A stretch of DNA of 64,000 nucleotides, taken from Selaginella moellendorffii. Lineage: Eukaryota > Plantae > Lycopodiophyta. The stretch is taken from positions 1,098,693 through 1,162,692 of the forward strand of contig NW_003314284.1 in NCBI RefSeq assembly GCF_000143415.4, given 5' to 3'. Positions within the stretch are counted from its first letter, which is position 1. Every line of letters starts with the position of its first letter. A program made the position numbers and the translations under genes. Under the pieces are notes generated by a model that saw only the letters and a list, made by a program, of their open reading frames with translations, searched no databases and had not been told where the DNA came from. Positions 7,767 to 27,552 of the stretch are shown piece by piece.

Positions 7767-8050
7767 ATGGTTAGTATTGATTTATCCATGTTAAAAAACT
7801 TAAGATATAATAAAATAAATCCCTTCTAATACCAGTTGTTAGAACTTAATGAAGAATTATCGCACTGATGTACAATAGATCACCACCCAACCACCTTCAA
7901 GCCCTCTGTGCCTTTATGCCATTGCTCACAGTTGTGAGTGTGCTCCACTTCCACTGTATCCCCAAAAGCCCTTGATTAGTTGTGATTAATCTTTGTAAAA
8001 TAGGTTATGGGTTAACTTTAATCCTAAGATTATAATAATCTTCCCCTAGT

Positions 8051-8993
8051 CTGATGCTGTATTCCAATATTAACACAGTGAGATTTTAATAGCTGTCAAA
8101 TTAGTTTCAATCTGAATCATTTGCTCCTATATATAATCTAAGGTTTTTAGACTAATTAATATGAATATTTTTGCATTCCCATTAGTTAAGGAGAGGGGTA
8201 TCTTTGATTGTCTCTAAGGAGTGCTTAGATTTGGGATTTTGGTTTAGATTTAACTTTTGCATTGTTTAAATCTCATTGTTCTTATAACGTTTTCAATTTT
8301 TTTTTTTTTTTTTGTTTTTTCTAGCTTTTTATTCATCTTCATATGGCAAAGCAACAATCTCCTCCTTTAACTTTAGAGTAATAGTTGATGTAGTTGTTTA
8401 ATATTATTGGTTGTAGTTGAACAATTAGACTCAATTAATAATAACATTTATGGCATATGGTATAACTCTCCGTGCACTTATTACCAATCCTCATATCTAG
8501 TCGAAATGATTCTTAGGATTCTTATAGAAAAACTCTAGCCGAATATGTGGATTGGTAGTAAGAGCAAGAGTAGTTGTGCCACATACTACTACTATCAATT
8601 GAGTTTAATTATTTAATTACAAACACATAGCATCAAACAATTGCATTAACTATTGCTCTATAGTTAAAGGAGGAGGCTGCCATGAAGATGAACAAAAAAG
8701 TAAAAAATAAACAAAAGAGAAGAAATTGAAAAAGCTATAAGGAAAGTGAGATTTAAATAATACAAAAGCTAAATCTAAATTAAATCTCAAATCCAAGCAC
8801 TTCCTAAGGAAAATTAAAGATGCCTTTTACCTCTACTAATGTGAGTGTATGGAATATAGAATTGAAATACAAAAATGTGCATTTTAATTAGCCCAAAAAC
8901 ACTAGTTTATATATAAAAGTGAGTGTTCCAAATTGAAATTAATCTAACAGTTATTAAAATCCCATTATACTAATATTAATATACAATATCATA
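8051..8993. repeat. Diverged inverted repeat (arms ~8051-8503 and ~8537-8993, spacer ~35 bp) containing LTR sequence
   Basis: The reverse complement of 8537-8993 aligns colinearly with 8051-8503. Examples: ggagtgcttagatttgggatttt vs ctcaaatccaagcacttcc, and ctcctttaactttagag vs ctctatagttaaaggag. Confidence 0.85.
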
Positions 8994-9014
8994 GCTGTAC
9001 ACTTGGATCTCACA
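8840..9014 (-). mobile_element. Solo/extra LTR copy of the local Ty3/gypsy family
   Basis: 175 bp, TGTGAG...CTCACA termini. It is a direct repeat of the LTR at 9089-9264, separated from it by a TA-rich microsatellite (9015-9088). Confidence 0.8.
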
Positions 9015-9088
9015 TACATACATATATTTTAGTTACTATATATAGTTAGTTTATTTATATTTATATTTATATATGTATGTATATATTG

Positions 9089-11122
9089 TGTGAGTGCTTG
9101 GAATATAAAAAGGGAATACAAAAAATGTGCATCTCAATTAACCCAAAAACCTTAGTTTATATACAAGAGTGAGTGGTCCGAATTGAAACCAATCTGACGG
9201 CTACCAAAATCCCACTACACTAATATTAATATATGGCATCGTAGCCATACACTTGGCCCTCACATCATCCCCTCCTCTTGGAATAATGGAAGACCATTAA
9301 GGTTCTCTTGTAAACGGGCTGGGATCTGGAGGACTGTCAGGAGGAGGCATCGGTGGATCTGTAAGTGGTATTAACTGCTTCTGATCCTTTTGTATAAAGC
9401 GTTTCAACTGATGTACATGCATAATCTCTGGAGGATTGGCCTGTTGGACATTATACCAAACCTCATAAACTTGAGGTCCAACTTGCCGCAACACCTAATA
9501 TGGTCCTTTCCACTACGCAAGGAGCCCTTAGACAAATTACATACTGTAAGATGGGGAAAACGGATTAACACCAAATCATCCACTTTGTACTCTGTAGGTA
9601 GACGATAATAGGAGTTGTAGCGCCATTGTTATCCCACTTGTATGCGGCCTAAGTGTTTAGCAGACTCAGCTCAAATAAGTGGAAGAATGCTTGTCAAATA
9701 CTGATCCCACGACCTAACATCAGTAGCTCGTGGCAATCGTGAAGGTAAACCTAGCTCTGTTAGTAATATTAGATCATGACCATATAAGAGTTTATATAGT
9801 GAAGCACCAACTGACTCTACACCCCTGTGACATATGCATACTGAAGAGACGGCAAATAACTATCCCAATCTGAATGCTGAAAGTTCACATACTTCGCAAT
9901 CATCCCTTTGAATGTCCGAACGAGCCGTTCCACCAGACTGTCTGATTGTGGATGATAAGCACTCATGAAAGTGTGGCGTATCCTCAACCAAAACGTCAAA
10001 ACATAAAATGCCTTAGCCATAAATGTGGGACCATTATCCGAAAGAATCCGCTCTAGACAAGAATGCTAGAACACCACTCGATTGAGGAGGAAGTATCCAA
10101 CAGTAGTTGTAGAAGCGCTAGCAAGAGCACCAACTTTCACCCAACGAGTCAAGTAGTCAAAAGCAATAATAACATACTCATTGCCAATAATTGATCGTGG
10201 AAAAAGTCCCATAAGATCAAACGCTATCAACTCAAACAGACGGAAAACTGCAATTGACTCCAACCGTCCTTCTGCAGCACGAGGGGGAGTATTACGAGCT
10301 TGACACCAAATGTAACTATGCATATATCGGATAATATTACATCGCATCTCTGGCCAATAGAAAGACCTATGCAGCTTCTCAGTTACACGACGATGTCCTA
10401 TATGCCCACCTAGAACAGGAGAATTATGGTAGGTATGGAGAAACTGTGGAATAAAGACAGAAGGCACCACTAGCCATAAATGATTATCAGGATCCGTCCC
10501 CACAAAATAAAGAAGGCCGTTGTCAAGGTGATATTGAGAATGTAAATGCCGGAATGGTAAGTCATCAATAAGTGATGCAAACTTCTCAAACCCATCTTGA
10601 AGCCTTCGAATTCACGACTCAATCTTTTGAGCCTCGCAAACCTCATCAAGAGAAGGTAGATCTTGCTCTACGCCTTGTGGACACTAAACATCAAGTACAG
10701 CAACCGCCGATGGCACAGATTCCTCATGTAGAAAATCCACAGATGTAGGAGCAATAGACTCATCAGAAACATGAGAAAAGAGTGAAGAAGGAAGAGGAGT
10801 TTGAGAAAGGGCATCAGCATTTGCAATAAAACTCCCTAGGCGATGAATAACATCAAAATCATATATCTGAAGCTTCAAAGCCCATTGAGCAATACGACCA
10901 ACTAGATTCTTCCACTTCAATAATGAAGTAACAGCAGTATAGTCACCTTCAAGTAATGTCTGAGAACCATGTAGATATATATGAAGTTTCTTGAAACCCC
11001 AAATTATTGCTAAACACTCCTTCTCTGTCATGGAGTAGTTCATCTCCGCTAGTTGTAATGTACGGCTTATATATGCAATGGGATGGCGCTGACTAGGCAC
11101 ACTCAAGCTCTTTTGCATCAAC
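9089..11122 (-). mobile_element. Ty3/gypsy LTR-retrotransposon 3' half (RNase H, integrase, PPT, 3' LTR), degenerate
   Basis: RNase H motif NYSMTEKECLAIIW. Integrase motifs YHNSPVLGGHIG..YWPEM..WCQ and SAYHPQSDSLVER. PPT (aagaggaggggatga on the minus strand, 9265-9279) abuts a 176-bp TG..CA LTR at 9089-9264. Multiple stops. Confidence 0.92.
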
Positions 11123-11124
11123 GA

Positions 11125-13512
11125 CTTATCTTGGGTACCGTATTTCTCGTAAGGGTTTGCAAGTTGATCCTAACAAACTTATGGTTGTTTTAAAGTTCTC
11201 TACTCCGAAGTGTATGAATGATGTGCAACACTTCTTGGGCAAAGTGTAATATGTTAATTGTTTTGTGGATCATCTTTTTAATCACACTGCACCATTGTGA
11301 ATGTTGCTGAAATCATTAGCGTTATTTTTCATTTGGTCTTCGGATTGTGAGTTAGCATTCATGGATCTTAAAGAGCTATTGACGACTTCTCCAGTTTTGG
11401 CATATCCTGATTACATTCAACTTTTTATTTTACGCATGGATGTTTTTGATATTAGTCTTGGAAGTGTGTTAATGCAAGAAAGCCCAAGTGTGCCTGGTTA
11501 ATGCCATTCCATTTTGTATATAAGCCATACATTACAACCAGCGGAAATGAACTACTCTACGACAGAGAATAAGTATTTAGCAGCAGTTTGGGGTTTCAAG
11601 AAACTTCATGCATATCTATATGGTTTTTGGACTTTACTTGAAGGTGATCATACTGCCGTTACTTCATTATTGAAGCGAAAGAACCTGGTTGATCATACTG
11701 CTTGGTGGGTTTTGAAGCTTTAGATATATGATTTTGAGGTTGTTCATCGCCCTAAAAGTTCTATGGCTGATGCTAATGTTTTTTCACGAGCTCCTCTTCC
11801 TTCTCCACTCTCTTCTCATGTTTCTAACAAGCCTATTGTTCTAGCATCTGTGGATTTTCCAGACGAGGATTCTGTGCCGTCAACGGTTGCTATACTTGAC
11901 ATTTAGTGTCTACAAAGTGCAGAGCAAGATCTTCCTTCTGTTGATGAGGTTCACGAGGCTCAAAAGATCGAGTTATGGATTCAAAGGCTTCGAGATGGGT
12001 TTGAGAATCTTGCATCACTTGCTGATGACTTGCCATTCCAGCATTTACATTCTCAATATCGCCTTGAAGATGACCTTATTTATTTTGTGAGGATGGATCT
12101 TGATAATCCTTTATGGTTGGTGGTGCCTTTTGTCTTTATTCCACGGTTTCTCCATGCCTATCATGATTCTTCTATTCTATATGGGCATATGGGACAATGT
12201 CGTGTGACCAAAAAGCTGCACAAGTCTTTCTATTGGCTGGAGATGTGACATGATATTATCCAATATATCCAGTATATGCGTAGTTGCATTTGGTGCCAAG
12301 CTCGTAGTACTCCCCCTCGTGCCGCGGAAGGATGGTTGGAGTTAATTGCAGTTTCCTGTCCATTTAAGTTGGTGGCATTTGAACTTATGGGACCTTTTCC
12401 ACGATCAACTGCTAGCAAATAAATATGTTATTATTACTTCTAATTATTTGACTTGTTAGGTGGAAGTTAGTGCTCTTGCTAGCGCCTTTGCAACTATTGT
12501 TGAATACTTCCTCCTCAATTGAGTGGTGTTCTAGGATTCTTGTCTAGAGCGAATTCTTTCGGATAATAGTCCCATGTTTATGGTTGAGGCATTTTATGTT
12601 TTGATATCTTGGTTGGGGATACGCCGCACTTTCACAAGTGCTTATCATCCATAGTCAGACGGTTTGGTGGAATGGCTCGTTTGGACATTCAAAGGAATGA
12701 TTGCGAAGTATGTGAATTTTCAGCATTTGGATTAGGATGGTTATTTGCCATCTCTTCGGTATGCATATGTCATAGGGGTACAGAGTTTTGTTGGTGCTTC
12801 ACCATATAAACTTCTATATGGTCATAATCCAATATTACCAACGGAGTTGGGTTTACTTTCGCGATTACCACAAGCAACCAATGCTAGGTTGTGGGATCAG
12901 TATTTGATAAGCATTTTTCCACTTGTCCGAGTAGAGTCTGCTGAACACTTAGGCCGTATACAAGTGGGACAACAATGGCATTACAATTCCTATCATTGTC
13001 TACCTGCAGAGTACAAAGTGGATGATTTGGTGTTAGTCCGTTTTCCCCATCTTATGGTATGTGGTTTATCTAAGGGGCTCCTTGCTAAGTGGAAAGGACC
13101 GTATCAGGTGTTATGGCAAGTTGGACTGCAAGTTTAAGAGGTTCGGCATGACATCTAGCAGGCCGATCCTCCAGAAATTGTACATGTGCAGCAGTTGAAA
13201 TGCTTCATATTAGGGATCAGGAACAACTGATACCACCTATAGATGTGCTGATGCCTCCTCCTAACATTCCTCCAAATCTCAAGCCATCTACAAGAGAACT
13301 CTAATGCTCTTCCATTATTCCAAGAGGAAGGGATGATGTGAGGTCCGAGTGTACGGCTACGATGCTATATTTTAATATTAGCATAGTGGGATTTTAGTAG
13401 TTGTTAGATTGGTTTTAATCCAGACCACTTGCTTTTGTATATAAGCTAAGGTTTTTGGGCTAATTGATATGCACATTTTCTGTATTCTCTTTCCATATTC
13501 CATGCACTCACA
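11125..13512 (+). mobile_element. Ty3/gypsy LTR-retrotransposon 3' part (RT C-terminus, RNase H, integrase with GPY/F, PPT, 3' LTR), degenerate
   Basis: YLGYRISRKGLQVDP..LTTSPVLAYPD, NYSTTENKYLAAVW and KWKGPYQVL. PPT aagaggaagggatga (13322-13336) precedes the LTR at 13337-13512 (TGTGAG..CTCACA). No gag or PBS is seen. Confidence 0.92.
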
Positions 13513-16500
13513 ATATGTATATTTGTTATTTGATTTTTATTTTTTTTGCCTTCTACTCTTTCCTAACCTTTTTTATTTCATGGCATGAGCTACCTTTTTA
13601 TGTTCTTTAAAGAGGAGAATTTTGCTTTTTTTTTGTTGGTAAAGCTTTTTTATCAGTTTTGGTGTTGAATATTCCTCTATTTCAAGAGTTGATTCACTTT
13701 TGCTAAAGTTTTAGATTGACTGTATATCTTTGGTTATAAATACTATTGACAATCTTTATTTTATTGTTAATATTGAGAAATTTATATGTTCCTTTATGAG
13801 GATGGACTTTTTTTATTAATTTTCTTATCTCAAGTATTGAGTTGTATGTTAAAGAGTTTGATTAGTATGAATTTATTATTTATCTTATGGTGGCTAAAGT
13901 ATTTTCTAATAAAAGGTAATTTATTCTCTTTTTATATCCTTATTTTTGCTTTAAACAATTGCTAAAAATCTTTTTTTGATGCTTCTTTATCCACTTCTCC
14001 CACAATGTGTCTTTATAATTTTTCTCATTATCTCCTCTTTGTCCAAATATTTTGAACTCTTTTTTCTTCAAAGGAGAGGTAAAAGGACAAATATGAGTTT
14101 GGCTCTGATGATGAAATAAGGACAAATGAATTCAATAGTGAAATAAGGAGGAATGATGTGCATCATAAAGTGAAGATGGGTATAACAAGTTTAAATAGAA
14201 CTAATGCTTCAAAAAAATATTTCTTTTGAAGAGGGGATAAGGAAAATGTAGAAGAAGAACAAAGTGAATATTGTGTTAGACGAGGACAAAGGTCATAAGT
14301 TTGAGTTAATATAACACTTGAAGGTTGATCGAAGAGAAGATGTAAATGTAAGTTTTGCTGATAGTTATAATTTGGAGTTAATAATGGTCTTGAAAGATGG
14401 CCAATAGGCAAACTTAGAGATAGGATGTCTCATTTGTTGCAATAGTGTTTTATGGCTAAGTTAGTGATTTAGTAGGAGTTTCAGTTTCTTCTAGCAATAT
14501 ATAACTATCCAGTAGAAACTTTAGATATTCCATCTAATTTATTTTCATCACTTTTTCATCTTCCAAAGGGGAAGTATTAAAAATGTGATTACAGATATCA
14601 AAAATTACCTATTTGTGAGTCCTTTCAAATATTTTTATCTTCCTACCACTAGCAAGAGGCTGATATTGTTGGTTTTATTTATTAGTCTCTACCAAAACTA
14701 CTTGAAAAACTAGTCACTATGTGTGCACTTATCCTAGATAAATATAAAGTAGAAATTTTTATGTATTTCTTGGTGAGTATACTCAACCTAGAATGAGAAA
14801 TTTATATATTGGGTTGCACTTACTAGTGTTAGAAACCCTTATGATATTGAGTTTAGTCTTTTAATATTAGATGATGATTTACTATCTCTGTCAAGACACT
14901 CTCACTATCATTCCCCATATATTGCTTTCGTTCTGTCTCTTTGCTATTTATGAAATTACATTTGTTAGTAAAGCATATTTACAAAATGTAGAAATTATCT
15001 TGAACACAATAGTGTTATTTTCACATCTAAATTCACAACTTAACACCATTCTATATTTAATAAATTTTAGTGATTATTCTAGAGATTAATTCTTGGGACT
15101 AGGTGAAAGCCCAAAATGTGCTTTTATATATGCTTTCATATAAAGGGTTTTAAATGTATAATAGGAATAATAGGTAAGTTGGGTATAACAAACCAACTTG
15201 AGACATAATCTTGCTCCCCACTAAGTGTATATATCTTTATTTTCATTCAACTTAAATTTAAGGCTAAACTTCATACCATGTTAGCTAATAGAATACTTAT
15301 ATCTTTGCAATATGCTATCAGTATGCTTAAATAGTACTAAATTCTATATAGCTCTATTTTACATGCATTAAGACTATTCTATTATCACTCCATGCTTTTA
15401 TTCATTTGCTTTTTGATTATATGTTTGAGAGTTTGGCTCCATCCCTTTGTTAGCAGTCCAAAGTTTTGAAACTTAAGTCCCACTCCATTGCTCTTAGCAC
15501 ACATATCTAAGGGTAAATTTTACTTTGTGAAGGTAAATCACTATAAAACATAAGGTAAAAACCATGTGCTAGTGTAAAGTATATAAATATATGTATCAAT
15601 ATATATGTATTGCCTTTTCTAGGTAATATGTTAATTATAGTACTATAACATATTAGTTGAATCCAATCCATAAAATAGGGGTCTAAACCATAATTAAGAT
15701 ATCTATTCATTTTTTTATTTGCATTATTTTCTCGTTCTCAATATGAATTATTCCCCCACTATCCCTATTATATATTTAGCAAAAATAATATCCATAAGAC
15801 ACCACTATCCCTATTATATTTTTAGCAAACATAAGTTGCTAGCTAAGCTCAAAGTTGATTTGTCCTTTGTCTAGGCTTGTCAAAGAACACTTCTTCTAGT
15901 CAAGCAAATAAAAAAGAATAACTATATTGACAAATCTCAACTCCTTAATATTAATATTACTATTGCTATTACTATTAGTAATATTACTAGTAAAGGAGAA
16001 TTAAGAGGATTAACAAAAGAAATAATGAGGAGAATATTTGAAAGAACATGTTGATATGTAACTTTCAATATTCAAGACAACTACATAGAAGATATAATTA
16101 CCTTAAAACTCAATTATCACAATGTATATGAGAAATTGCCATACAAAGTCATTATGCTCGTAGAGAGCAACTGAGCTATGTTTGCAAGAGATCAAGGAAG
16201 CATCACTAAGATGACCTATAAAATTTTCCACACCACATAACTTGAGTGACAAGTTTGTTCAATACACTTTCTGGAGATACACTCATTGAACAGCACTACT
16301 GGATTGCAGCCTTAGAGTTCTAAATACTATGGTATCAAATCAGTCATTGGCAAGGATCAAGCGTCCAAATCTTAGCAATTCAATCACGTTGTCTAGTAAT
16401 TCAATGGAAAGAGAGTTTTCATCTAAAACAAGCTCCTCAAATCAAAGCCCCCTAAAGATTAAAAAAAGGTTTATCGAACTCCCACCCAGCTGGACGATTT
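13513..16500. other. AT-rich, CpG-depleted non-genic DNA (probably old repeat debris)
   Basis: Composition differs sharply from the flanking genes, there are no credible ORFs, and a ~28-bp direct repeat (ccactatccctattatat.tttagcaaa) lies near 15756-15830. Confidence 0.5.
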
Positions 16501-23159: not shown

Positions 23160-25070
23160 ATGGCTCCTGCTGCGGCCATGGCCGGGCTCGCTTGCTCGTG
23201 CCTGGCGCTCAATCACCACAGCTGGGGAAATGCCGACGGAATCCTCTCCGCTTGGCCATCGCGATCCCTGCATGCTCATGGAATCGCCAGTCGCCGTGTC
23301 TGGAGCAGCGGATTTAGTAGAAGAGATCTTCGTTTCTCCAGATGGACATTTGCGACTCCAACTCCAGTTCACGCTCAGGCTCAAGCAGCTCCGGTGATAA
23401 ACGAGAAAAATAATCTGGTAAGCACCAATCCATCGAGCTTGCCACCACTCACCAGTGCTCCAGCTAGTTATCCAGAGTGCCTTGAGATCCAAGGCGGCAC
23501 AGTTCTATCTGGCCACGTCCAGATAAGTGGTGCCAAGAACTCGGCGCTAGCAGTTCTCGCTGGTGCCTTGTGTACCAACGATCAAGTCAGCCTCCGGATG
23601 GTTCCGGACCTCCATGACATCCGGAGGATGTTCCAGGTGCTCCAGTCAGTCGGGGTGCGCATCAGACGAGAGGCTTGCGACATTGTGATTGACTCTCGTC
23701 ATATCACTTCGGTGGAGCCGTGCCCCGACGTCGTGAGGAAGCTCAGAGCGAGCTTCTTTGTCATCGGTGCTCTTGTGGGACGACAGGGTGAAGCGGTAGT
23801 TCCTCTACCTGGTGGTTGCAACATTGGAGCTAGACCGATTGATCTTCACGTCCGTGGCTTGCAAGCTTTGGGAGCGCAAGTGAAAGTCAGGCTAGTGATG
23901 TTTCCTTTTTTATTTTATTTTATTTCTCCTTGTTGACAACTCATCCAACGTTGTACTTTGCAGGCATGGGAAAGTTCATGCTCGAGCAGCGAATGGATCA
24001 AAACTGGTCGGTGGGAGCTTCTGTCTTGACTATCCGAGCGTTGGCGCGACGGAGACGTTGATGATGGCTGCGGCACTGGCAGATGGCAAGTCGACGTTGT
24101 ACAATGTCGCTCAGGTATGATTTTCTTACGTTGCTGCCTTCTCATGAAACGTAATGCATGGAAAGAATTAACGTCGTTCAGGAACCCGAGGTTGTGGATC
24201 TTGCGGAGTTTCTGAACTCTTGTGGTGCAAACATAACTGGTGCAGGAACCAAGTGTCTCTCGGTCGAAGGGGTCCCGAGATTGCACGGGACGTCGTTTAC
24301 GATAATTCCAGATCGCATTGAAGCTGGGACATTCTTGATGGCCGCAGCCATAACACGGTCATCCATTTCCATGTCTCGAGTTGTGCCTCGACACTTGGTT
24401 GCTGTTGTGAGCAAGCTACAACAAATCGGCTGCAAAATTGTGCAAACCGCACCCGACGGGCTCGAGGTAAATTCCTCGTGATCAAGTGGCTTGGCGGTAT
24501 GTACCACGAGTTCGTGCAGGTGACTTGCGGTTCGCGTCTCCAAAGGCTGGATGTGACAACCCTTCCGTATCCTGGTTTTCCCACTGACTTGCAACCACAG
24601 ATGTCATCTCTTATGACAACTTGTTGCGGACAAAGTATCGTGGAAGAAACTGTATTTGAGAGCAGGATGCGGCACGGTAAAAACTTTGAGTGTTCCATTG
24701 CGCTGCTATTTCATGGTGAGGTACTGTGCAGTGGAGGAGCTTCAAAAGCTGGGAGCTAAAATAAGAGTGAGCAAGAACTTAGCATTTATAAGTGGCAAGG
24801 ACCAAGGAAGGTATAGCGTTTTTGGGTCGTTCTTTTGCAACATCATGCGTGTGGTTTCTTGGCAGCTCTTTGTACGGAGCCCCGGTTCTAGCAACGGATT
24901 TACGAGCGGGAGCCGCTTTGGTTCTTGCTGGAATGGCTGGTGAAGGCGTCACCACTATTGAAGGTGTCAGTCACATTGACAGGGGCTACGAAAAACTCGA
25001 TGTTAAACTTGCCAAACTCGGGGCCAAACTAACTAGGAAAGCTTGTTTACCGTCTGAGCTGACACTCTGA
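23160..25070 (+). CDS. MurA: UDP-N-acetylglucosamine 1-carboxyvinyltransferase, plastid-targeted (multi-exon)
   Basis: Motifs [31 protein letters not shown] (catalytic-loop Cys), [42 protein letters not shown] and HIDRGYE. There is a ~100-aa Ser/Arg-rich N-terminal extension. Confidence 0.97.
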
Positions 25071-25343
25071 TGAGACGTTTCGTGCAGTTTTGTGCTGTGA
25101 TTTCTTTTTGCTGTTCCTCATTTTGAGACGATAATCTGAGGAGGTAATAAATTTTTTCTCCACCGTGCTGACCAATCAGTAGTTATTTGTCGGATGGCGT
25201 GAAACTCAGAAGAAGATTATCAACAATCCAGCGTACGAAAAACGTCTATATTTGCAAGAACGAGGAACGCTCCAAAAGCGTGGAAGGTAAGGAGGTTTCT
25301 CTTTCAGTAAAAATTCGATCCTTCTTACTCTTTCAGCTCGAAG

Positions 25344-26399
25344 ATGTCTAAACTCCAGGCTCAAGCAAGGGTCCCCTGCAAAGCTCCTGACTGTTTGAGG
25401 TCGTTTACGAGCAAGGAGTACATGCTACAACATTTCAGAGATAGTCACGGCCAATGTTCTGGCTCAACCAAGGCTCCCTCGGCCCCAACTCCTACTCCGA
25501 AAGTCCTGGCCTGCAGTGACTGTGGAGCGAAGTTCCGGGATCACCAGCAGCTCCATCAGCACCAGCGGTCGTCAGCAGCGCATATGAAGGTGTCCGGCCC
25601 ACGGGACGGGGGAAAGCACTTCTCATGCTTCGTGTGCGGCGCGAAGTTCGACTCCCCGCAGTACCTGGACCAGCACTTCCTGGTAAAGCACGCAGGTAAC
25701 CACTCCTCTGGCCAGTTTCCAGAAGCTCTCTCGTTATTTACCCGTGTTTTTTCAGTGGAGGGCATGCGCAGGGACGACCCGGAACGAGGAAGAGTCTTGG
25801 CATACTTCCGTGCCAAATGGAACCATCCAGGCAGCGAAGCGTCCATCATTGACATCCTCCGCGTGTACAATCCGGGTCACAGGGTGAAGCGGTTCGCGGA
25901 CTACAGAGAAAAGCTGATGGCCCAGAGAGGCAGCAGGGACGAGAAGATTGGAAAGAATGGAAACGAGGTCCTGCGCTTCCACGGCACGACGGTCCTGTGC
26001 GGGCTCGGGACGCCGCAGCAGCAGTCACTGTGCAGCAATCTCTCGTGCAGCCTCTGCAACATCATCCTGGCCGGATTCAAGAAGAAGAAAGCAAAGGTGG
26101 ATGGATTCCTCCGGTTTGGGGCGGGGATCTATGTGACGGCAACCAGCAGCAAGGCAAACGACTATGTCAAGGCCTACGGCAGCTCCTCGGGTTCCAGACA
26201 CCATGCCATGCTCGTGTGTAAGGTTCTGGCCGGGCGAGTGTTCAAGGTGACCGAGGACAGGCCCGAGTTGGTTGCTCCACCGGATGGCTATCACTCCGTG
26301 TCTGGTGAAGTGGGAGGGATACTCAACTTTGATGAGCTTGTGGTGTATGATAATGCTGCCATCCTTCCTCAGTCTATTATTGTCTATGATATCATGTAG
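25344..26399 (+). CDS. Three C2H2 zinc fingers fused to a PARP-like ADP-ribosyltransferase domain
   Basis: Fingers CKAPDC..H..H, CSDC..H..H and CFVC..H..H. ART motifs NEVLRFHGT, FGAGIYVTATSSKANDY, MLVCKVLAGR and DELVVYDNAAILP. Single coding exon. Confidence 0.88.
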   Translation: MSKLQAQARVPCKAPDCLRSFTSKEYMLQHFRDSHGQCSGSTKAPSAPTPTPKVLACSDCGAKFRDHQQLHQHQRSSAAHMKVSGPRDGGKHFSCFVCGAKFDSPQYLDQHFLVKHAGNHSSGQFPEALSLFTRVFSVEGMRRDDPERGRVLAYFRAKWNHPGSEASIIDILRVYNPGHRVKRFADYREKLMAQRGSRDEKIGKNGNEVLRFHGTTVLCGLGTPQQQSLCSNLSCSLCNIILAGFKKKKAKVDGFLRFGAGIYVTATSSKANDYVKAYGSSSGSRHHAMLVCKVLAGRVFKVTEDRPELVAPPDGYHSVSGEVGGILNFDELVVYDNAAILPQSIIVYDIM

Positions 26400-26589
26400 A
26401 CAATGCATCCAAAGTTTGCTAAAATTTTAGCTATAGTTTAAATTCAAGTATTTAAAGGTACTCAACTATCCCCTTAAGCTTTGCATAACTAGTTCCCGAT
26501 TTTTAATCACAGCCAGTAACCTTTTCCTTTTTCCCTAACTCTATATAAATTAGCTTGTGCATTAGGTTTTGCCATAAGGTTTTGGCGAG

Positions 26590-27552
26590 ATGACGAGGTG
26601 GTCGAGGATCTTAGTGTTCGTGGTTGAAATCTTGGCTCTCTGCGTGTGCGTGTATGGGAGGTCGATTCCTCAACTGAGGACTATCTACATGGGAGATTCA
26701 ATCTTCGACGTGGGCACAAACAAATATGTGAAGGATTCAGTTTCGCGCTGTGATTTTGTGCCATATGGGGAGACGAGGTTTAGAAAGCCATCCGGAAGGT
26801 GTAGTGATGGGTTTATAATTCCAGATCTGATAAACAAGGCGATAGGTTTGCCCTTTTCAAGACCATTCTTGGGCTTGAAAGCTGGGAGTCAATTTCCACT
26901 AAGCATCAACTTTGCTTCATACGGCAGTGGTTTACTTGACTCGACTCACTCGGACTGGGGCGTTGTGTCATTTAACGAGCAACTTAAGCAGCTTGGGCAA
27001 CTCTCCAAGAAGAATCTCAATCTCAATGATTTTGTGGTTGTGATATCTTCTAGTGGGAACGATATTGCAGCAAATCTTCAAGACATAGCTAATGTTGACT
27101 TGAAAGCAATGTTAACATCACTCGAGAAGGGCTTACAAGAGCTGTACAATCATGGATTTCGGAAGACTATCTACTCTAGTGTTGGGGCACTAGGATGTTC
27201 GCCTATTGTGACTTCCGGAGGGAGATGTGTGAGTGAGATTAACAATCTGGTGGAAGAATTCAATATACAAGCTCGGGAGATTGTTTTGGGGGTGGCAAAG
27301 AAGTTTCCAGGGATGAAAGGAGCATTTGTGGATGGTTACTCTTTGATTAAATCATATGTGGACAATCCAAAGAGGTTTGGATTTAAGAAAGCTGGTGGTT
27401 GTTGCCCCAACTGCCTTTCACAAAAGAACACATTTAGTGGGTTGTGCAAGAATCCAAGTGATTATGTCTTCTGGGATATAATACACCCAACTGAACACAC
27501 GTACACACGCTTAACTAAGGAATTCATGAAGCAAATTAAAAAATTATTGTAA
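26590..27552 (+). CDS. Secreted GDSL esterase/lipase, intronless
   Basis: Signal peptide, block I MGDSIFDVGTN, PSGRCSDG, NFASYGSG, GND and the catalytic WDIIHPT. TATA box ctatataaat at ~26541. Confidence 0.93.
   Translation: MTRWSRILVFVVEILALCVCVYGRSIPQLRTIYMGDSIFDVGTNKYVKDSVSRCDFVPYGETRFRKPSGRCSDGFIIPDLINKAIGLPFSRPFLGLKAGSQFPLSINFASYGSGLLDSTHSDWGVVSFNEQLKQLGQLSKKNLNLNDFVVVISSSGNDIAANLQDIANVDLKAMLTSLEKGLQELYNHGFRKTIYSSVGALGCSPIVTSGGRCVSEINNLVEEFNIQAREIVLGVAKKFPGMKGAFVDGYSLIKSYVDNPKRFGFKKAGGCCPNCLSQKNTFSGLCKNPSDYVFWDIIHPTEHTYTRLTKEFMKQIKKLL

Follow-up and report, generated by a model that had tools for sequence, protein, structure and literature searches.

A C2H2 zinc-finger protein of Selaginella moellendorffii with a predicted PARP-type fold, an intact H-Y-Y-E set and a conserved four-cysteine insert

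The stretch of DNA analyzed here (the window) comprises 64,000 nucleotides (nt) of contig NW_003314284.1 from the lycophyte Selaginella moellendorffii, and the subject of this study is a forward-strand gene at positions 25344–26399, whose product combines three C2H2 zinc-finger motifs with a predicted ADP-ribosyltransferase (ART) domain from the family of poly(ADP-ribose) polymerases (PARPs). We propose, with a probability that we put at roughly 0.6, that this gene is an active-type member of an ancient PARP branch lying outside the surveys that we searched, its fingers serving in targeting and four conserved cysteines (Cys4) in its ART domain forming a zinc site.

Gene structure, zinc fingers and ART fold

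The open reading frame (ORF) that the first-pass annotation had placed at 25344–26399 (+) runs from ATG to stop over 351 codons, as described, while the accompanying claim of a single-exon gene did not hold. The best database match is an NCBI protein of S. moellendorffii named "tankyrase-like isoform X1" (P0001, 331 aa), which has the same sequence as the ORF except that ORF residues 118–137 (20 aa) are absent from it. Positions 25696–25755 form a canonical GT..AG intron of 60 nt, with the upstream exon ending in CAG, the intron running from GTAAC to TTTTTTCAG and the downstream exon opening with TG; the intron preserves the reading frame and contains no stop codon, which leaves the ORF open in its unspliced form as well. 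Transcript evidence was drawn from contigs of four runs, each from a different study, placed on 25100–26700. All long contigs of the four runs skip exactly these 60 nt at the GT..AG joint. Three runs have no depth at all over the intron and the fourth has 6.4 versus 48.9, and joining 25344–25695 to 25756–26399 by script gives a translation that equals P0001 exactly. We conclude that this is a transcribed gene of two coding exons whose spliced transcript encodes 331 aa. That the functional product is instead the 351-aa protein, made by intron retention, we regard as very unlikely: the intron could be translated in its open frame and one run does show low cover over it, but the three other runs show none, every long contig is spliced, and nothing in the orthologues corresponds to the 20 extra residues, finger 3 of the Marchantia and Mesotaenium proteins leading directly into "HAV" or "HPV". 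Residues GNHSSGQFPEALSLFTRVFS are the peptide that would mark the unspliced 351-aa product.

Removal of the intron converts ORF residues H213, Y263, Y274 and E331 into H193, Y243, Y254 and E311 of the mature numbering, and ORF C219, C230, C235 and C238 into C199, C210, C215 and C218. In the 5′ untranslated region (UTR), loose contig ends at 25286 in runs X2 and X4 run on with CTCGAAGATGTCTAAAC, identical to the sequence from 25337, and the intron at 25287–25336 is retained in other contigs. At the other end, transcript cover stops at about 26476, where a contig of run X1 ends some 77 nt past the stop codon, and there is none over 26504–26700. The features of the gene are as follows.

25287..25336 (+): optional 5′ UTR intron, 50 nt, GTAAGG...TTTCAG
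25344..25695 (+): coding exon 1, with the start codon and the three C2H2 fingers, ending on base 1 of codon 118
25696..25755 (+): coding intron, GT..AG, 60 nt, skipped in four runs and missing from the NCBI protein model
25756..26399 (+): coding exon 2 with the stop codon, predicted PARP-type ADP-ribosyltransferase domain, mature aa 118–331
25980..25982 (+): His codon H213/H193, in FHGT, aligned with tankyrase-1 FHGS
25998..26057 (+): Cys4 insert, C-x10-C-x4-C-x2-C, mature C199, C210, C215 and C218, putative zinc module
26130..26132 (+): Tyr codon Y263/Y243, in FGAGIY, aligned with tankyrase-1 FGAGIY
26163..26165 (+): Tyr codon Y274/Y254, in SSKANDY, aligned with tankyrase-1 SSKSNQY
26334..26336 (+): Glu codon E331/E311, in FDELVVY, aligned with the Glu of tankyrase-1 YAEYVIY
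26400..26476 (+): 3′ UTR, to the last base under a transcript contig

The three C2H2 fingers reported ahead of the ART domain were recovered as C-x4-C-x12-H-x5-H (aa 12–35), C-x2-C-x12-H-x6-H (aa 57–80) and C-x2-C-x12-H-x4-H (aa 95–116), with two Pfam finger models scoring above their cut-offs (zf-met, 31.5 bits against 21.2; zf-C2H2, 28.2 bits against 25.2). With their long His spacings these fingers are of the matrin/U1 ("zf-met") kind and take up the N-terminal third of the protein, which by these three motif matches is a C2H2 zinc-finger protein for which nucleic-acid binding is predicted. An AlphaFold2 (AF2) model was built from a 148-sequence alignment and has a mean predicted local distance difference test score (pLDDT) of 86.9 and a predicted template-modeling score (pTM) of 0.75. 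In this model fingers 1 and 3 have a pLDDT of 88–94 and the ART domain is mostly above 85, falling to about 80 over two blocks of ten residues. The ART domain begins straight after finger 3, and its start is confidently modeled as one unit with that finger. WGR, BRCT, PARP_reg, WWE, RST, ankyrin and SAM domains gave no Pfam match at E ≤ 1, in agreement with the absence of WGR, BRCT, regulatory and WWE/RST domains noted at first reading, and the ART domain stands alone, without a helical regulatory domain.

Assignment of this domain to the PARP family draws on sequence profiles and on the model. Pfam PARP (PF00644) matches at 42.7–43 bits against a cut-off of 26.7, with E about 5e-11 (4.7e-11 to 6e-11). 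A Foldseek search of the PDB returns tankyrase-1/2 catalytic domains as its first 49 matches, with E about 2e-16, a template-modeling (TM) score of about 0.8 by target and 25% identity, and a wide VIA-align search places tankyrase-2 (TNKS2) first with Z 24.0 and a root-mean-square deviation (rmsd) of 2.0 Å over 188 residues at 28% identity. Tankyrase-1 (TNKS1, Z 22.3), PARP3 (22.0), PARP10 (21.3), PARP4 (21.1), PARP1 (21.0) and PARP13 (19.8) follow, then RCD1 (17.9), wheat SRO1 (15.5) and PARP16 (13.6), with toxins of the diphtheria-toxin type at 5–7; eleven different solved PARP catalytic domains in all reach Z 20–24 with an rmsd of 1.7–2.5 Å. The family profile, run against PDB sequences, ranks the same proteins in a similar manner (TNKS1 6.7e-15, PARP3 8e-7, PARP4 2e-6, PARP1 4e-4). 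The protein is, as modeled, of the PARP-family (diphtheria-toxin-like, H-Y-E) ART fold, and its nearest solved relative by sequence and predicted fold is tankyrase, not PARP1.

In the HMMER alignments FGAGIY pairs with FGAGIY of tankyrase-1, SSKANDY with SSKSNQY, DELVVY with AEYVIY and RFHGT with LFHGS, from which we argue that the His, the two Tyr and the Glu occupy the positions that line the tankyrase NAD site. In PARP1 and tankyrase these residues serve to hold NAD+ and make it reactive, the second Tyr stacking on nicotinamide. All four residues named in the first-pass annotation, in FHGT, FGAGIY, SSKANDY and DELVVY, were located, as was the 11-residue spacing of the two tyrosines, but the label given there, a PARP1-type active site, proved too specific, for tankyrases share the whole set and are closer. 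Across the aligned family H193 is kept in 145 of 148 members, Y243 in 144 and Y254 in 135, a Glu occupies the E311 column in 142 of the 145 sequences with a residue there, and the full H-Y-Y-E set is present in 130 of 145 members, from algae to fungi.

The Cys4 insert, its family and their descent

Where tankyrase has 4 residues between FHGS and the helix AIIHKGF, the Selaginella protein has about 25 after FHGT. In the AF2 model this insert lies between the HGT strand (188–193) and helix α1 (216–223), its last two Cys falling at the start of that helix, and the Cys4 region has a pLDDT of 88–96. The equivalent of the donor loop (D-loop), residues 224–241, comes after the helix. Of the possible zinc module first described in the donor loop, the four Cys are real and invariant, while the insert adjoins the D-loop, ahead of α1. 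The family motif C-x(6–25)-C-x4-C-x2-C occurs in 148 of 148 aligned members with the x4 and x2 spacings fixed, a stricter conservation than that of the catalytic residues (135–145), and the four Cys persist in each of the 38 sequences, from the streptophyte clade and outgroups, that were tabulated for active-site residues, those with a dead active site included. Conservation of this kind suggests a putative zinc site.

The closest solved comparison, tankyrase-1/2 (human PARP5a/5b), has features in common with the Selaginella protein and also differs from it. Common to both are H-Y-E, a second Tyr placed at +11, the SSK motif, the lack of a helical regulatory domain and a zinc site in the ART domain, shown for tankyrase and putative here. 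Tankyrases, which make up PARP clade 4, carry ankyrin repeat clusters and a SAM domain, both missing from the Selaginella protein, which has C2H2 fingers in their stead. The tankyrase Cys-His-Cys-Cys zinc loop, 12 residues past SSKSNQY (PMC8941426), stands opposite a gap in the Selaginella protein, whose Cys4 lies some 40 residues earlier. According to Sowa and Lehtio (PMC8941426), tankyrase is the only ARTD known to bind zinc in its catalytic domain, through a motif with a structural role. That the gene is a true orthologue of tankyrase, as "tankyrase-like" in RefSeq would have it, is hardly credible: the tankyrase catalytic domains are indeed the best solved match in both sequence and fold, but their margin over PARP3, PARP10, PARP4 and PARP1 is just 2–3 Z units, ankyrin and SAM domains are missing, the tankyrase zinc loop meets a gap and the Cys4 insert sits where tankyrase has four residues.

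We define the Cys4-insert PARP family by the insert between the HG[ST] strand and helix α1. An exhaustive hidden Markov model (HMM) search of 1.84 billion representative proteins, with a profile made from four close catalytic domains, gave 2976 matches at E ≤ 1e-3, 1236 at E ≤ 1e-10 and 287 at E ≤ 1e-30. By these sequence matches the family comprises at least 287 representative clusters in streptophytes, fungi, Amoebozoa and brown algae, with the following members.

Basidiomycota: many genera
Chytrid: Siphonaria
Mucoromycota/Glomeromycota: Endogone, Glomus, Gigaspora, Dentiscutata
Amoebozoa: Balamuthia
Brown algae: Ectocarpus, Pylaiella
Streptophyte algae: Mesotaenium, Coleochaete
Liverworts: Marchantia paleacea, M. 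polymorpha
Lycophytes: Selaginella, Diphasiastrum
Ferns: Adiantum, Psilotum, Ceratopteris
Seed plants: Ginkgo, Zizania, Brassica, Prunus

The N-terminal partner of the ART domain is C2H2 fingers in plants and Cys-rich repeats in Basidiomycota, and as it varies from group to group the Cys4-ART unit appears to behave as a portable catalytic module. The finger-plus-ART architecture is common to Marchantia, Adiantum, Mesotaenium and Selaginella, down to an "ACxDCG..F......L.QH" second finger. The Atlas also lists, close to the catalytic domain, a cluster of PARP-domain proteins from Ascomycota that are 227 aa long. Two further arrangements were observed: in Glomeromycota (P0218 from Gigaspora margarita, P0214 from Dentiscutata) the ART module is joined to three EH domains and EF-hands, and in a metagenomic protein (P0215) it occurs with an AAA_12 helicase and a DCD ("development and cell death") domain.

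The first-pass annotation had left two origins side by side, ancestral retention and horizontal acquisition, of which retention is favored and an acquisition by Selaginella from fungi is rejected. A fungal look did mark the early searches: in word-index protein searches the named matches outside Selaginella were nearly all fungal, Marchantia paleacea being the sole other plant and seed-plant relatives missing, and language-model and shape searches ranked Basidiomycota clusters first. The word-index picture was a sampling artifact, which the exhaustive profile search and cluster look-ups corrected, bringing in closer relatives from a fern, liverworts, lycophytes, charophyte and zygnematophyte algae and seed plants. 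In a careful maximum-likelihood tree of 71 catalytic domains, which is unrooted, 7 named streptophytes and 10 further sequences form one group (100/100), and all 10 named Dikarya and chytrid sequences fall in a separate one; a second careful tree gives the streptophyte clade at 100/99. Forcing Selaginella together with the 30-member fungal group costs 56.5 log-likelihood units (approximately unbiased (AU) test, p-AU 4.9e-5), a p-value weakened by the choice of this whole 30-member clade after the tree had been seen. An earlier AU constraint, uniting Selaginella with the ten named fungi only, was given little weight, the fungi being interleaved with other sequences. The gene further has spliceosomal introns and a plant-specific C2H2 head in common with Marchantia and Adiantum. 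From the streptophyte clade and the AU rejection we argue that the data favor vertical inheritance within streptophytes, which leaves a transfer from a fungus into Selaginella highly improbable. A very old transfer between kingdoms, for example at the base of the streptophytes, may be compatible with the unrooted family tree.

Intact and degenerate lineages and the proposed activity

The phylogeny with scoring of the four catalytic residues that had been suggested as a check was run, with key residues tabulated for 32 members of the streptophyte clade and 6 outgroups. An intact class, with H-Y-Y-E and K250, comprises Selaginella, Adiantum, both Marchantia species, Mesotaenium and 11 further sequences, and is a paraphyletic grade in the careful tree. 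Ceratopteris and one further sequence keep H-Y-Y, the matched stretch ending before the Glu column. A degenerate class comprises Diphasiastrum (two genes), Psilotum, Coleochaete, Ginkgo, Zizania, Brassica, Prunus and 5 further sequences; Y254 is always lost in it, Y243 and/or H193 often, and K250 is usually replaced by R, as exemplified by Brassica (Q-R-A-D), Prunus (H-L-K-E) and Ginkgo (H-F-S-E), and the class has the motif GNELLRFH/Y. It forms a single clade (98/96, in 97% of bootstrap trees) that is nested in the streptophyte clade with Coleochaete basal. The simplest reading of these sequences is one duplication before land plants, then one loss of the active site. The relatives described at first reading, GNELLRFH proteins of flowering plants lacking the two tyrosines and fungal proteins with RFGxGIY..SSKxNDY, were both seen, the former pattern holding for the seed-plant relatives.

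Every named seed-plant sequence recovered is of the degenerate kind, which suggests that the intact form is absent from seed plants. These members give no Pfam PARP match at E ≤ 0.1, and the Atlas shape search finds large Streptophyta C2H2 clusters that lack PARP annotation and align with TM 0.60–0.65 over 233–252 residues. The "C2H2-like zinc finger proteins" of seed plants (BBG95669.1 from Prunus dulcis, KAF2589395.1 from Brassica cretica, Gb_30270 from Ginkgo and KAL5225695.1 from Zizania) share with the Selaginella protein an upstream C2H2 finger, GNE[LV]LRF and the Cys4, but differ in their degenerate active site and separate 98/96 lineage, and are presumably pseudo-enzymes. Among the lycophytes, Diphasiastrum complanatum (P0110, P0170, P0220, P0221) has at least two degenerate loci, the adjacent O6H91_08G024300/024400 and O6H91_01G016400. 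Within the named matches Diphasiastrum lacks an intact-type gene and Selaginella has only intact-type copies; it may be that each lycophyte retained the paralogue that the other lost.

If the Selaginella protein is active, its action could be pictured as follows. The fingers would bring it to an RNA, DNA or chromatin partner, where an ART domain that we infer to be constitutively open, as it has no autoinhibitory helical domain, would use NAD+ to attach ADP-ribose to a protein or a nucleic-acid end close by; whether mono- or poly-ADP-ribose would result is not predicted by H-Y-E alone. The four Cys would bind one zinc, bracing the start of α1 and the loop beside the NAD+ pocket, a role that may be structural by analogy with the differently placed zinc motif of tankyrase. 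The sister lineage, on the simplest reading, lost the active site once, and it is the sole form seen in the seed plants sampled. For the defense-related function that the first-pass annotation also raised, the analysis gave evidence in neither direction.

The alternative that deserves most attention is a pseudo-enzyme, in which the ART domain, as part of a C2H2 transcription factor, would serve to bind NAD+, ADP-ribose or a partner, or as a scaffold for them. RCD1/SRO, PARP13 and TASOR are non-catalytic PARP folds that serve as binding or scaffold modules. Against the model, the pseudo-PARP domains of RCD1, SRO1 and TASOR reach Z 15–18, and the degenerate sister lineage has been retained across vascular plants with its Cys4 intact, which argues that the fold has a non-catalytic use. 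Active PARPs nevertheless score above these pseudo-PARPs (Z 21–24 against 15–18), and H, Y, Y, E and K250 are intact in Selaginella and in all members of the intact grade, which extends from ferns back to a zygnematophyte alga, while the sister lineage decayed fast. Purifying selection on catalysis would be expected to leave such a contrast: with the degenerate lineage showing relaxed constraint, retention in Selaginella argues for selection on catalysis. On balance we judge a pseudo-enzyme unlikely, though well worth keeping in mind.

The reading of the gene as an active-type enzyme has to be held against several points. Despite their H-Y-E, PARP3 and PARP4 count as mono-transferases; the triad is necessary and insufficient for activity or for polymer formation. 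PDB entry titles likewise call PARP4 a mono-ADP-ribosyltransferase. The Marchantia orthologue is catalogued as a transcription factor, MpC2H2-23, a label that suits a pseudo-enzyme. The putative zinc site is read from conservation, and the finger type is a weak hint as to the ligand, zf-C2H2_jaz scoring below its cut-off. That the four runs are RNA is a guess by the tool, not on record, which the splicing and the absent intergenic cover back. Finally, no biochemically characterized family member was found in the searchable literature, outside which most subscription journals lie.

Known systems, meaning and surroundings of the gene

Membership of an established group was considered against the six PARP clades of Citarelli et al. 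(2010), who list only clades 1 and 6 for fungi and do not mention Selaginella. PARP1–3 (clade 1) was rejected, with no PF05406 or PF02877 match and the ART domain directly after finger 3, as was SRO/RCD1 (clade 2), with no RST/WWE match and the triad intact. SRO/RCD1 proteins are also plant PARP folds outside PARP1–3, but they have WWE and RST domains and lack the triad. PARP6/8/16 (clade 6), marked by a third triad residue other than Glu, Cys-rich sequence ahead of the ART domain and a helical extension, was rejected as well: the Glu is present, the Cys4 lies inside the ART domain, unlike the CX2CX9-19CX4C of PARP6/8, and PARP16 reaches Z 13.6 versus 21–24 for clades 1, 3, 4 and 5.

In layout, the animal proteins PARP12, PARP13/ZAP and PARP7 are analogous, with N-terminal nucleic-acid-binding zinc fingers and an ART domain. 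ZAP binds viral RNA through CCCH fingers. These animal proteins differ in having CCCH fingers, WWE, H-Y-I or degenerate triads and no Cys4 insert; Citarelli et al. (2010) place their clade 3 only in animals, Dictyostelium and Tetrahymena. Likened by description only is Fusarium PARP-C, a short, catalytic-only protein with H-Y-E that is separate from PARP1 and PARP-Ubc and MMS-induced (methyl methanesulfonate) in some strains (bioRxiv 10.64898/2026.07.25.740670). A counterpart with the same architecture in the streptophyte clade is Marchantia polymorpha MpC2H2-23 (Mp6g04430, MARPO_0034s0076), in which C2H2 fingers lead into an ART domain with H-Y-Y-E and the Cys4, at 35% identity. It figures solely in transcription-factor catalogues, is expressed in the archegoniophore, belongs to the core pangenome and is lost in Riccia and Ricciocarpos (PMC11923412); no functional study of it and no mention of its PARP domain were found in the literature.

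As for other surveys, Perina et al. (2014) do not mention a PARP type with a Cys4 insert, a 2025 plant PARP phylogenomics paper covers PARP1–3 only, and an October 2026 review of fungal ADP-ribosylation covers only fPARP1 and fPARP2. The phrase "C2H2-like zinc finger protein" occurs in none of the best-ranked matches of a literature search that paired it with PARP or ADP-ribosyl. What is new relative to the literature searched is the Cys4-insert PARP family and its link to the C2H2-like proteins of seed plants. The initial description of a candidate unrecognized plant ART stands insofar as the PARP surveys searched omit the clade; automatic annotation already uses "tankyrase-like" and "PARP catalytic domain-containing", and as it sees the PARP domain the gene is better called unstudied than unrecognized.

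More tentatively, and at somewhat short of even odds, we suggest that the Cys4 proteins make up a seventh ancient eukaryotic PARP clade, overlooked by the six-clade scheme, with a second kind of zinc site in an ART domain, its intact plant form (in Selaginella, ferns, liverworts and streptophyte algae) active and aimed by matrin/U1-like fingers at RNA, DNA or chromatin, and its seed-plant forms pseudo-enzyme descendants. Plant ADP-ribosylation is currently framed as PARP1–3 plus the inactive SRO/RCD1. An active intact form would give non-seed plants an ADP-ribose writer beyond PARP1–3, a new one also for fungi, amoebae and brown algae, and the zinc site, if real, would be the second in a PARP catalytic domain, a feature said to be unique to tankyrases (PMC8941426). 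The seed-plant "C2H2-like" family gains an origin and a predicted fold, its ART ancestry being invisible to Pfam. The question lends itself to direct testing, given the contrast of intact and degenerate forms and, in Mp6g04430, a tractable orthologue from Marchantia.

Paralogues of the gene within the window were not found by tblastn. Degenerate copies lie outside it, SELMODRAFT_414288, 414283, 414286 and 414281 on the 2.03-Mb scaffold and 410097 on another; the corresponding models are P0004, P0005, P0007 and P0035 on the same scaffold and P0002 on another. These models enter other reading frames or end early and look like pseudogenized or fragmentary duplicates. In P0035, which is 558 aa long and has no Pfam match, the last ~52 residues are 85% identical (BLASTP) to the C-terminus of the ART protein.

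Downstream, a GDSL lipase ORF at 26590–27552 (+) encodes 320 aa and spans the whole Pfam model in one piece, consistent with the intronless GDSL neighbor of the first-pass annotation; its first 110 nt have zero cover in the four transcriptome-like runs. Upstream, 24478–25180 (+) holds the last exons of a MurA-like gene of the EPSP_synthase family, whose transcript contigs end at about 25180; the first contigs of the ART gene start only some 100 nt farther on. In run X3 one contig reaches without a break from 25100 to within the ART coding region, which would allow read-through or a longer 5′ UTR. Between 25181 and 25358, contigs of three of the four studies carry a cluster of eight substitutions as well as 1 nt inserted after 25273, with depth partly on the reference and partly on the variant, most simply a second haplotype of the genome. 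Elsewhere in the window, 8001–16000 is an AT-rich block with a GC content of 0.29–0.40, compared with 0.45–0.60 in the remainder.

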